A stretch of 64,000 nt of DNA from Calcarisporiella thermophila CBS 279.70 (Eukaryota; Fungi; Calcarisporiellomycota): assembly GCF_041956535.1 (NCBI RefSeq), contig NW_027192191.1:593077-657076 (forward strand), written 5' to 3'. The position numbers and the translations under genes are program-made. Shown here in pieces: positions 20,468 to 26,947 of the stretch. Each line of letters opens with the position of its first letter. Positions within the stretch are counted from its first letter, which is position 1. The notes beneath the pieces were generated by a model, which was given only the letters and a program-made list of their open reading frames with translations, was not told the origin of the DNA and searched no databases.

Positions 20468-20799
20468 AGAAGGAGTGCAGGTTTCATTCATAGATATTGT
20501 AAAATCTGCAATTGCAGTATCGCCAATGGCAAAGTACAATTCAATGTATGTTTTTTTGAAATGTTTGTAATATATGAGCGTGTATTTTAGTAATGAAATG
20601 GTGACCTGTGGCGCGAATATAAAATTTATTAGAGCAAAATAAATTCAAGGTAGATATAAGGATATTGAATACAGTTTTAGTGCGAACAAACAAAAAAGAG
20701 ATAAATAAGTCTCATTAGAGCATATAACGGACCAGGAACCCACCTAGTGTCTGGCCTTAAAAAAAATGATTCATCAGTATAACATACCAGACTACAAAA

Positions 20800-21672
20800 T
20801 CATAATACAAAATCAGGGAATCCTTGATCCTCCTCAAAGAGATGGGCTATATCAACCATTTCTCTAGTATGATCTAAATTTTCTAATGGCCAAATTGAAT
20901 CTAGACACTCGATTTGTGGCAAATATGGTCCAACCTTGTCATCGATCTCAGCAATTGGGCTATATTGATCATCATGAATATACCCTGTAGGGTATACACT
21001 AACGTCAAATTCAGATTGAACTAAGTCTAGCCAAGCCCAGTTAATCGGGTCGAGTATATTGGGTAGTGGTGCATTTGGCAGCAATGGCAGCTGAAGCTGA
21101 TCAGAAAAATAAGTTTCCTCCGCTGTGTGTTGAGTATCAGGTTGATGGCACTCTATTGTGGAGGGCTTCTCATTCGAACCGGAGCTTTTGATCGACTCTA
21201 AAGAGTTAATAGGCGGTCTTTCGATAATGAAATGGGAATCGATTGGATTGAAGCGATGGTTGCTGAAATTTTTGCATAGGTGTTGTACCTTCGCATGATC
21301 GGCTCGAACTTCATATTCTTTCTTTATTTCTTCTGGTTCTTGGCGCCACATATTAGCAATGACTTTTGATATCGCAGAGCTATGCATTTTTGGGTTGAGT
21401 GCTGCGACTTTCTGACAATGTTCTTGCCGATAGAGGATGAAAGCATTCGGCGGTCGCCGGATTCTTGAAGCTGTCATGGGAATTTTCTCTTTTTTACCCG
21501 TTTCCACTGTAGACTTCTTATTTTTGTTTTTTTTGGAATCCACATTGATATTGGAATCCCGAATTCCGAGAATTGGACACGAATTATAATCCTTATGACC
21601 ACACACAAACTGAATGGGTCTCTCACTTTGAGGATTACTGAGTGAAGTAGCTGTATCATGTGAATATGACAT
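20800..21672 (-). CDS. MATA-type HMG-box transcription factor (SexM/SexP, MAT1-2-1 or Ste11-like), intronless
   Basis: RIRRPPNAFILYRQEH..NPKMHSSAISKVIANMWRQEPEEIKKEYEVRA..K..H is a sequence-specific HMG box, followed by an acidic/hydrophobic activation-like C-terminus. Confidence 0.93.
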   Translation of the reverse strand: MSYSHDTATSLSNPQSERPIQFVCGHKDYNSCPILGIRDSNINVDSKKNKNKKSTVETGKKEKIPMTASRIRRPPNAFILYRQEHCQKVAALNPKMHSSAISKVIANMWRQEPEEIKKEYEVRADHAKVQHLCKNFSNHRFNPIDSHFIIERPPINSLESIKSSGSNEKPSTIECHQPDTQHTAEETYFSDQLQLPLLPNAPLPNILDPINWAWLDLVQSEFDVSVYPTGYIHDDQYSPIAEIDDKVGPYLPQIECLDSIWPLENLDHTREMVDIAHLFEEDQGFPDFVL

Positions 21673-22129
21673 AATGGTGGGAAAGGAAAATGCAAATTCC
21701 TTCAGATGGAATTAGCCAAGTGTAAGAAGAGATTACTGGTGCAATGAGATACAACTTATCTCTTAGTTTATATAAAGTTTTTCATTTCTCCACTTTAAAA
21801 TTTCTCAGTTCTTTGTCTTTTAAAATTTTTTTTCACGTTAGTATCTAGTCACACATATGGTCGAAGAATAAAGTAGATTTGCTTCTCAAATGAGAAAAAC
21901 TAGATAAAAGATAGACTCTAATAGAATATATCATTCAATAATTCAATATAATACTACTTATATTTTATTGTCTCTGAATTAGTACGAATTTATACGATAG
22001 CTTGATATCTGTATAAGGAAAAATTATTTTATAACCGAATATGACTACTAGCTTCGAGTACTTTCCCCTCTAAATCTAAGGAATTTGTTTTCTTTATTTA
22101 ATTAGAGTTCATTAAGAACCAAGTGATTT

Positions 22130-22139
22130 AACAAAGAAA
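22130..22139 (-). promoter_or_regulatory. TR-box-type HMG binding site (TTTCTTTGTT)
   Basis: AACAAAGAAA on the + strand, in the divergent HMG/BTB spacer, ~70 nt upstream of the BTB-like ATG. Confidence 0.35.
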
Positions 22140-22211
22140 GTTTATTTTTTGGCAACACGAATAACATTTTACTTTTATTCTTTTTCTTCTCAATTGTATT
22201 TTTCATTTACT

Positions 22212-22778
22212 ATGGATTCCAAAGGTTTAGAATTATATACTATATATGAAGTGTTTCCAATTTTGACTTCACAATGCTGGAATATTTGCGATGAAACCTC
22301 TATTAAAATGCATCTTATCACTCGTGAAGAATTGCTTCAATCGTCAGGATTAGCTACAATGTTTAATACTAGTGCAAAAATGAAAACATTTTACCTGGGC
22401 AGTGAGACCATCACTACAATTACAGCATTTATAATTGATCAATCAGTCATTTCTCTTTGGATTCGTCCAGAAATTCTCATTAAACAAACTCGTTTTTTTG
22501 AAAGGATACTTAGTGATCTTTCGCCAGGCGAGGAGTTTCTTCTTATTGTCCCAGAAAAGCGTGCGTTTGCAGATATTTGTCGTTGGCTTTATTTAAAGGA
22601 TGATGAATCATGGTTTGCATCATTGGACCATAATAATATTGGAGTCGTAGAAGAGATGTTAGCTGAATTGGAATTAATCGAGATAGTTGAAATACATGCT
22701 GTGCAAGTTATGAATGGCAGACTTGGGTTTAAAAAGAGAATACAAGCACGCCTTAAGAGTAATGTGTTGAGTAATTGA
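22212..22778 (+). CDS. Intronless protein with a degenerate BTB/POZ-like domain
   Basis: 188-aa ORF in very AT-rich DNA. SLWIRPEILIKQTRFFERIL..FLLIVPEKRAFADICRWLY resembles the BTB pattern (iL...S.fF..l ... i.l.e....F..ll.wlY). Confidence 0.6.
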   Translation: MDSKGLELYTIYEVFPILTSQCWNICDETSIKMHLITREELLQSSGLATMFNTSAKMKTFYLGSETITTITAFIIDQSVISLWIRPEILIKQTRFFERILSDLSPGEEFLLIVPEKRAFADICRWLYLKDDESWFASLDHNNIGVVEEMLAELELIEIVEIHAVQVMNGRLGFKKRIQARLKSNVLSN

Positions 22779-24292: not shown

Positions 24293-24464
24293 TAGCAGTT
24301 TCTAATAAGAGTAACGCGATTGTGAATTAAACATTAATTATGTGGCGTAGCCGCAAACTAAATGAAAATAATAAAACATCAAGAAAGATTTAAAGAATCC
24401 TTATCAATATGCGAGAGTTTCCAGCTTTTTAAATGTGTGTCCCAGTGATAATGAAAAATAATAA

Positions 24465-24474
24465 AACAAAGAAA
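24465..24474 (-). promoter_or_regulatory. TR-box-type HMG binding site (TTTCTTTGTT)
   Basis: AACAAAGAAA on the + strand, between the homeodomain gene stop and the beta-propeller gene start. Confidence 0.3.
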
Positions 24475-24571
24475 AACAGTGGAAAATGATAAAGTTTTTG
24501 AAATAAATAGACACGAAAAATGGATATAATAAATATCATACGAGTGCAATATGAACAAAACAATTGGGCTA

Positions 24572-25252
24572 TTATATCATGTGATCTCTATGTGAATTCG
24601 TGGAAATTTCCAATAAAGTAATGATGAGGAGGGCAATCTTAGCATAAAGCTCTTTATCAATCTCCTCTACACTAAAAATTTTCGTAGAAGAACCGCTGCT
24701 ATCAAATTTTGGGAACCTACGTCGCGCATTGGAGAACCAGTTTGAAACTTGTTTTAGCGAGAGACACGCGTGCTCAGCTAAGAAAATTTTCTCTTCGAGC
24801 GAAGGATAGGTGTTAACACCATGATAATACAAACGAAGAATCTCGAGCTGCTTTTCAGAAAACGAAATTCTAGATCTTGTGTGGCCCCCGGCGTCGGCTA
24901 TAATCGTATTCGAGTAAGACAGCTCCGAAAATTCTCTCGACATTATATGTCTCACTTTCTCAGGAGAACCACTAGAAAGTATATTGCACATTTCACAAAT
25001 ATCCAAATCCGCCCCCAAACGATGTTTTTGTAGGGGAATTAACAAAGTCTCCAGAGTTCGCAGAAATTCGTTGCGAAATTTTGATTGATTCTCCTCTAAT
25101 TCTGAAATTCCAAGGACCCTAATTGAGTCTAACATCCCATAAACATCGTTGAACCACTGGGTAAGTGAAATCTCAGACAGATCGTTCCGAGTTGCCCATT
25201 CTTCGATTTGATGAATAATCGTAGATAATTTATGCTTTAGAGATGAATTCAT
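24572..25252 (-). CDS. Homeodomain transcription factor with N-terminal helical region (mating-type HD-like), intronless
   Basis: [51 protein letters not shown]. The ATG at 25252 gives 226 aa, with ~120 aa of amphipathic N-terminal sequence. Confidence 0.92.
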
Positions 25253-26947
25253 TTGAATAAATAAGAGGAAAAAAAAAGAATATATTAATATTTCCACCTA
25301 TATATCTTCCAAATCAAATAAGAAGCTAATAATTTACTTAGTTTTGCTCATCGATTGAATATGCACTCTGTTCAATGTGAAAAACTTAAATGAGTTTAAA
25401 CTCAGAGTTGAGAATCAGTAATATGAGAAATGAATTCAGCACAATGAGTATCACTGCTCTAGCTCAAAACAATTTGTATATATCCACTATTGAGGCGATC
25501 TTCTTCTTGCATCAGGTGTAGTTATGCTAACTCAGCCATATGCCAATTTGCAATGCTTTTTTACCGAAGAATTGGATATTTGTAGCAAAATCGAGTTGAT
25601 CATATATTGAAATTGGTTCCTCCATCAATTTCAATTAAAATATCAAAAGCCTTTTCACACTGGATTAACTGGATCATTCATTTGGACTCTTAAATTAAAA
25701 AAAAATTGGCTAAAAACAAATCTTTTCACAAACGAGCATTATGATGAGGTTAAAATATCAATAAGTCTACAAGAATATTTAAAAAATTCTTACGTTTCTC
25801 TTCTGTATACTATTTTCCTTATTGGCGGTGTTGTAGAGTAGCACTAAAATAATTTAGCGATAGTTATCCCTATTATAATTCAATTTGAATTATGTAATAC
25901 TTGTAGCTCTTATTTTGTTATAGCTCTGACTAGGACATGCAGGCAGTTTAACGCTCTAGCCTGACCATGTTTGTTGATACATAACGCGGACTTGGATTTT
26001 AACAACAAAGGGGTGTTTAGATATGTGTTTTGTAGGCAATATGCCCAACAAATCGATGCTATATCTCAAGATAAGTATGGAACGTCTATGCCAAAAGCCA
26101 TCCTATGTCTGAGAGGGGTGCCACAGTTCTTGGAGAGGGATTTGCCAAAGAGAGGAAGATTGCATAGGAAGATGTGAGGGGAAATTAGATACACGTTTCA
26201 TGTTGGTATTGGGGATAGCGCAGCCTCAATGGGAAATTGACCTTTCCCACCACGCAGTATAAAGTTCCGGGATATTTATTAAGTCGCTCGACTCCATCCA
26301 ATAGCGAATACGACTTTGCGTCTGTACCCTAGCACCTAGGCTTAGGCTCGGAAACAGACCCAGGTGTGTCGCTCCAGTTGCACATACGCACAGAGATGCT
26401 CATTGATGTGATCAGTTGCCATATTGGTGTTATAGGAGATATGTGCTCTTCTCGAACGTGCGTTAATGGCCTGACGAAATTCCAGAGAAGTGTTCGGTGA
26501 ATATGGCGCCGAATTTCAGTCTCACCATGATAGATTTTTAATGCATTTTAACGGCTCACTTTTTCACTGAAACGACAAATCACTGTCCATCCTGGAGCTA
26601 CATGGCCATGTTTGTTAAAGTCCCATTTACTTTTGAGGCTCAATTTTGCTATAATCATTATCGAATTGTTCTAAATCCTGTATTCATCCAATCATCATGC
26701 TTACCATTCCTCCACGGCCCAATTTTACGTCACGGCATGGACTAATTTCGATTTTTTATATTCAACCTTTTTTTTTTTTCAACTCCAGAGTGCACGGTGC
26801 TTCCGTTTTAATGGAATTGGGTCCATGTACGTTGAGACTTTTGAGCATGTAAGAACTTGAACGCAATTAACTCTTGGATTGGTCGGGAAGTAAAGAGAAT
26901 TCGACATTGACAAGCAAGAAAAAATTATACTATTTCGCTTTACCATA

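Follow-up and report, generated by a model that had tools for sequence, protein, structure and literature searches.

Calcarisporiella thermophila CBS 279.70, whose genus is filed by NCBI under the Calcarisporiellales, is represented by a haploid genome assembly of 28.16 Mb in 116 contigs (GCF_041956535.1). The window analysed here is a stretch of 64,000 nucleotides of contig NW_027192191.1 (positions 593,077 to 657,076 of the forward strand), in which an HMG-box gene and a homeodomain gene lie in an AT-rich block of four genes that we consider as a candidate mating-type locus. The block and its flanks comprise the following features, given in window coordinates; GC3 is the GC content at third codon positions and ORF stands for open reading frame.

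17245..20467, plus strand: PMT family gene, left flank; 800 amino acids, 12 introns, GC3 0.50, PF16192 on the last two exons
20470..25950, no strand: AT-rich, single-copy, repeat-free block of four genes, from composition and copy-number scans
20800..21672, minus strand: MATA/SOX-type HMG-box gene; intron-free, 290 amino acids, box at about residues 69-143, PF00505
22130..22138, minus strand: HMG-site (TR-box core) in the divergent spacer between the HMG and BTB-like genes, some 75-80 nt ahead of the BTB-like start codon
22212..22778, plus strand: BTB/POZ-like orphan ORF; intron-free, single copy, 188 amino acids, GC3 0.27
22845..24292, minus strand: BBS7/FG-GAP-like beta-propeller gene VTP21DRAFT_274; 7 exons, 361 amino acids, from the exon map
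24464..24473, minus strand: one full TR-box consensus, between the homeodomain stop and the beta-propeller start
24572..25252, minus strand: TALE/HD1-like homeodomain gene; open frame, 226 amino acids from the first ATG, assigned by Pfam
26948..28299, plus strand: ATF1/Sko1-like bZIP gene, right flank; PF00170, start inferred from the sequence

Both regulators had been noted in a preliminary description of this DNA, and both are borne out: the intron-free MATA-type HMG gene is an uninterrupted frame with a PF00505 match at E=1.7e-18, and the homeodomain gene matches PF05920 (E=6e-12) and PF00046 (E=2e-11), its lack of introns being read from the open frame. The distance of 2.9 kb between them agrees with the measured gap of 2,900 nt; the two further genes in this interval, the BTB-like ORF and the beta-propeller gene, had been overlooked. 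The HMG gene and the 188 amino acid ORF are oriented head-to-head, all four block ORFs are intact, and no Rfam match, notable repeat, transposon or second copy was found in the block. The flanks named earlier stand as a PMT family gene and an ATF1-like bZIP gene, the Aft1_OSA match of the latter staying below the cut-off (E=0.0035).

The exact 290 amino acid HMG protein is present in NCBI/UniRef, and the best solved relatives of its box in the PDB are SRY/SOX boxes. A genome search, in which spliced genes were covered exon by exon, revealed 25 matches to the HMG box, spread over about 19 loci; seven are of the MATA type. Six of these seven have introns that interrupt the box or fall at its edge, and the window gene is the sole intron-free member; sexP of Rhizopus is likewise intron-free (PMC3000332). 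In a word search of the protein collection, for which 170 candidates were scored, the only other match to reach E<=1e-8 was with a protein of Penicilliopsis (38% over 77 amino acids, box only), and SexP/SexM were not listed at this threshold. The Penicilliopsis gene lies between SLA2 and APN2, together with COX13 and APC5, a layout that we take to be that of ascomycete MAT1-2-1. Because the search scored 170 candidates only, this match is a hint and not a sign of orthology. An alpha-box in the window protein (PF04769, E=0.013) falls below the cut-off, and the box ends in HLCKNFSNHRF, where relatives keep a Y-P-x-Y motif.

The exact 226 amino acid homeodomain protein is absent from the protein collection, and its start and intron-free model therefore rest on the open frame. 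The homeodomain spans residues 123-183; its helix 3 is of the TALE type and position 50 is a serine, as in alpha2 and Pi. The loop of the domain is one residue longer than in a standard homeodomain and two shorter than in a true TALE protein. The approximately 110 residues preceding the domain are predicted, with low confidence, to be helical, as is the C-terminal tail. The best solved relatives in the PDB are TGIF and PBX. Among 36 homeodomain matches in the genome, nine are ordinary TGIF-like TALE genes, and the window gene branches off by itself as sister to the whole set, its grouping with the TALE genes being supported by a Shimodaira-Hasegawa-like approximate likelihood ratio test (SH-aLRT) value of 100. 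A word search of the protein collection returned no homologue. By the language-model features of the ESM Atlas, the protein is nearest to a Basidiomycota homeodomain cluster (0.90), and clusters labelled Mating_N, Ustilago_mating and 'HD1 family' score 0.78-0.84; we treat this likeness to basidiomycete homeodomain clusters as a lead only. There is no Mating_N match in Pfam, and the single-sequence AlphaFold model (pLDDT ~40) made fold searches uninformative. An HD2 partner was not found, as the window holds a single homeodomain match and the next ones on the contig lie more than 260 kb away.

Between the two regulators, the 188 amino acid ORF is single copy in the genome and has no match in the Pfam copy used, from which the CLP1 family itself is absent. 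In the ESM Atlas, it scores 0.95 with a Mucoromycota BTB cluster and 0.89 with a basidiomycete CLP1 cluster, which we again take as a lead only. The Clp1 likeness, with a score below the tool's own threshold, is suggestive because the homeodomain heterodimer of Cryptococcus is known to target Clp1 (PMC13001979). The AlphaFold model of this ORF (pLDDT 39) was likewise uninformative in fold searches. The beta-propeller protein, for which the full-length sequence was taken from the database and matches a window exon at 100%, is conserved from Mucorales (about 41% in orthologues) to molluscs. Its tree follows species relationships, with C. thermophila as sister to Mucorales (SH-aLRT 91) and Geosiphon and Basidiobolus outside. 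On this phylogenetic evidence, the block is native fungal DNA, and horizontal transfer or contamination was ruled out. An aspartic protease gene adjoins the beta-propeller gene in Basidiobolus as well as on a contig from a soil metagenome.

With a GC content of 0.339, positions 20470-25950 form the lowest 5-kb stretch of the window (0.442 overall). The best change-points, at 21480 and 25920, separate a GC of 0.33 inside from 0.42 outside. The earlier statement that the block is more AT-rich than its flanks applies to the block as a whole, with a correction for the HMG coding region (0.41). The shift is also seen within the conserved beta-propeller gene, whose GC3 is 0.29 versus 0.50 in the PMT gene (P=2e-11) and whose introns have a GC of 0.235 versus 0.337 (P=0.0014); codon counts and frame check for PMT were obtained from the joined exons of the 12-intron, 800 amino acid model. 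The beta-propeller GC3 also falls below that of the orthologues in Geosiphon, Basidiobolus and Mycotypha (0.32-0.36), although these loci are more AT-rich. The same AT-shift signature has been reported for the non-recombining P/R loci of Cryptococcus (PMC12510652). Two HMG-site cores in the block spacers represent a weak excess over AT-rich control tiles (P ~0.03), and the window-wide count of TR-box-type sites gave no significant excess. A reading of these sites as two perfect TR boxes was rejected, since one is a full box and the other, at 22130..22138, has the core without the full 10-mer.

A canonical tptA-sex-rnhA locus elsewhere in the genome, which the preliminary description named as a refutation, was not found: in exon-wise searches that can miss genes, every MATA-type HMG gene was more than 100 kb away from the TPT, alginate lyase and SF1-helicase matches. 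The TPT match nearest to the window HMG gene is 244 kb away, and the exon-wise search gave no alginate lyase or SF1-helicase match on the window's contig. Two further HMG loci were considered as rival mating-type candidates and dismissed, as both consist of intron-bearing genes among housekeeping neighbours. At the first, C13 (94070-99772), an intron-bearing HMG gene and a standard homeodomain gene lie 5.5 kb apart in DNA of ordinary GC, with two housekeeping genes between them, a C2H2 zinc-finger and an Rcf2/HIG1-like gene, and apparently a tRNA-like stretch beyond the homeodomain gene. The second, C35:152048, is an intron-bearing MATA-type HMG gene in DNA of about 33% GC, whose neighbours, read by eye, are a 497 amino acid UDP-glycosyltransferase-like ORF and a MED14-like Mediator subunit gene. 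For the remaining four MATA-type loci, the flanks were covered to 1.5 kb. A divergent MATA-type HMG gene at C18:183103 gives the genome's only MATalpha_HMG match, a weak one (E=0.02), with a double-HMG gene at a distance of 10 kb and a homeodomain gene at 21 kb. On C5 (343774 and 355123), an alginate lyase gene, of an algA-type family that is linked to sex loci in Mucorales, is located about 11 kb from an ordinary TALE homeodomain gene, probably by chance. The meiotic gene HOP2 is present in the genome; a search for SPO11 gave no match, and intron-split genes can escape such a search.

Further observations concern the rest of the window. Five transcription-factor genes, namely YAP-like bZIP, HAP2/NF-YA, HMG, homeodomain and ATF1-like, are found within 19 kb (9359-28299). 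Between the block and the ATF1-like gene, positions 25965-26570 have normal GC and stop-broken, protein-like frames in single copy, possibly a decayed gene or a long ATF1 promoter; a Pfam search of 25950-26700 gave no match. On the minus strand, 29014-32034 is a 1,006 amino acid open frame of low complexity, rich in Glu, Ala, Pro and Thr, and probably part of a longer gene. An intron-free gene at 62536-63561 encodes a 341 amino acid homoserine-acetyltransferase-like alpha/beta hydrolase that forms a singleton cluster and could be of bacterial origin. A multi-exon gene at 4020-6388 reads as an IgA peptidase M64-family protein, and 7047-7445 encodes a small, Cys-rich, secreted-looking protein.

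Mating-type loci generally encode an HMG, alpha-box or homeodomain transcription factor, and so does the block. An HMG-type and a TALE-class homeodomain gene likewise share one allele in S. pombe mat1-P (Pc + Pi) and in budding-yeast MATalpha (alpha1 + alpha2). The a1+a2 pair that had earlier been put forward as an analogue does not fit; because the homeodomain groups with the TALE class, the analogue is Pc+Pi or alpha1+alpha2. In these yeast loci the two genes diverge from one promoter, whereas here they stand in tandem with two genes between them. In addition, the window HMG protein is of the MATA type without an alpha-box above the cut-off, and the single-copy block has no silent cassettes. 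Neither linkage to SLA2/APN2 nor orthology to alpha-box or MAT1-2-1 genes, as in ascomycetes, was found, the flanks being PMT and ATF1.

In Mucorales and Umbelopsis, the HMG gene is linked to tptA and alginate lyase and, in most cases, also to rnhA (PMC7928374, PMC5982828), of which rnhA resembles Ecm32-like helicases (PMC7490403). The sex locus of Mucorales, the nearest well-studied relatives, and of Umbelopsidales (agl-tptA-sexP/sexM-rnhA or DUF2405) likewise contains an intron-free MATA/SOX-type HMG gene, and Rhizopus (+) alleles carry a BTB-domain passenger. This passenger is a large ankyrin/RCC1/BTB protein, in contrast to the 188 amino acid ORF here; none of the tested flanks, tptA/algA and rnhA, is linked to the block, and a homeodomain gene is present. 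The putative mating-type locus of Rhizophagus and the basidiomycete homeodomain loci (bE/bW, Sxi1alpha) likewise show a fast-evolving homeodomain and an N-terminal helical region in front of an HD1-type domain, and Cryptococcus has a single homeodomain gene per allele, as in the block. The block differs from these loci in that no divergent HD2 partner and no Mating_N match in Pfam were found and in that an HMG gene is present; in Geosiphon, the beta-propeller gene is not beside homeodomain genes. Since the structural traits of the Mucorales, HD1 + HD2 and SLA2/APN2 loci are all missing, the block belongs to none of these types.

The case for a mating-type locus is strengthened by the sole intron-free MATA-type HMG gene, the orphan HD1-like gene, the AT-shifted codons and introns, and the failure to find a Mucorales sex locus. 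It is further favoured because the one E<=1e-8 match of the HMG protein is presumably an ascomycete MAT1-2-1, because HOP2 is kept, and because a MATA-type HMG gene within 3.5 kb of a TALE homeodomain gene is expected by chance with P ~0.02 (P ~0.06 for any homeodomain gene), assuming uniform placement and using the paralogue counts found. We see an even chance that the block is one allele of a mating-type locus. With the same balance of confidence and doubt, it may be the strongest of the mating-type candidates that were examined in the genome, most similar, by analogy, to S. pombe mat1-P. The earlier proposal of an idiomorph of an undescribed sex locus flanked by PMT and ATF1-like genes has thus gained circumstantial support, and conserved linkage was not found.

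This and several other observations weigh against a mating-type role. Six fungi (Geosiphon, Basidiobolus, Mycotypha, Cunninghamella, a further genome of the Mucorales clade and Rhizophlyctis) carry no MATA-type HMG, homeodomain, PMT or ATF1 gene within 10 kb of their beta-propeller orthologue; in Mycotypha, an HMG gene at a distance of 3.3 kb was rejected as a MATA-type gene, its 94 amino acid product being of the NHP6 type. The single haploid assembly contains no second allele or copy of the block, a query for sequencing runs covering 18500-28300 gave none, and metagenome scans with the beta-propeller yielded no close relative, returning seven distant loci without HMG, homeodomain or BTB matches. 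An HMG-box tree that held no SexP/SexM gives the window gene no firm position, the two regulators are in tandem rather than divergent, and transcription-factor genes (YAP-like, HAP2, ATF1) abound in the region. As for base composition, the beta-propeller gene leans towards AT in other species too; in the left part of the window, other spacers are equally AT-rich (0.28-0.34); two other sampled transcription-factor loci are as low in GC, and the C35 HMG gene sits in DNA of 0.33. The C13 pair of ordinary family members implies that HMG-homeodomain proximity can arise by chance. Finally, the genus is described as anamorphic in the title of Hirose 2012, as cited in PMC10386755, and the literature searched contained neither a sexual state of C. 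thermophila nor work on mating type in Calcarisporiella.

The most serious alternative, which we rate as possible although clearly less probable than a mating-type allele, is a chance neighbourhood in which a retroposed or young HMG paralogue and orphan TALE and BTB genes ended up in a patch of low GC and weak expression within a region rich in transcription factors, without a mating-type role; either factor may still act in development. About 19 HMG and 36 homeodomain loci in 28 Mb, the second pair on C13, the chance expectation for some pair this close (P ~0.06-0.16), the very uneven GC across the fetched transcription-factor loci (0.33-0.61) and the lack of conserved linkage in the six fungi are consistent with it. 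Both families are large and dispersed; both genes are nonetheless outliers within their families, unlike the C13 pair, so that the paralogue comparison proposed earlier points both ways. The sharp composition edges, the AT shift inside a conserved gene and the absence of a better sex-locus candidate among the seven MATA-type loci also argue against mere chance.

It is unlikely that the block is a relic or fused locus, formerly mating-type, that has become monomorphic, every strain of an asexual or self-fertile species carrying both the HMG and the homeodomain gene. Mating-type-like signatures in a species described as anamorphic, the single copy in the assembly and the altered HMG box end, which may reflect drift, would fit this explanation, yet the four ORFs are intact, HOP2 is retained, and the AT drift requires a long time without recombination. 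We consider it very improbable that a single regulator determines sex, the HMG gene as in Mucorales or the homeodomain gene as proposed for Rhizophagus, with the other as a captured passenger. Passenger capture does occur in the sex alleles of Mucorales, the Rhizopus (+) BTB/ankyrin/RCC1 gene being an example (PMC3000332), and with the change-point at 21480 the larger part of the HMG ORF falls outside the AT-rich part; against this, both regulators are orphans. Equally improbable is a centromere-proximal or heterochromatic GC trough: GC troughs are described at yeast centromeres (PMC2997560); against this, the 5-kb block is dense in genes and free of repeats, unlike a centromere.

If the block is a mating-type allele, a mechanism can be inferred from the observed gene content, protein classes and base composition, all of its steps being conditional. 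By analogy with S. pombe mat1-P, the HMG protein would bind AACAAAG-type sites and set haploid mating identity. Through its N-terminal helices, the HD1-like protein would pair after cell fusion with a partner encoded by the opposite allele and activate zygote or meiotic genes, in the manner of Pi in S. pombe, alpha2 in yeast and HD1 in basidiomycetes. Low recombination between unlike alleles could entail the loss of GC-biased gene conversion, so that a captured beta-propeller gene would drift to AT, and the BTB-like ORF may be a captured or co-regulated gene of sexual development.

Sex is determined by HMG genes in Mucorales, and the candidate locus of arbuscular mycorrhizal fungi consists of homeodomain genes; the ancestral type, and a joint action of both, are stated as an open question (PMC7490403, PMC10386755, PMC2999568). 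It is conceivable, though improbable, that homeodomain and HMG genes already shared one locus in the last common ancestor of Mucoromycota and Dikarya, that this locus is still functional here, perhaps with a Clp1-like gene, and that it later kept only HMG in Mucorales and only homeodomain genes in Glomeromycotina and Basidiomycota; the preliminary suggestion of such an ancestral combination found no support in synteny or phylogeny here. If the block is a mating-type locus, it would work like Pc+Pi or alpha1+alpha2 and would be, in the literature searched, the first case of combined homeodomain and HMG genes outside Ascomycota, as no such locus was found there for the phylum. It would thereby be placed in the Calcarisporiellales, which stand next to Mucoromycotina, a lineage where the question of HMG versus homeodomain genes matters.

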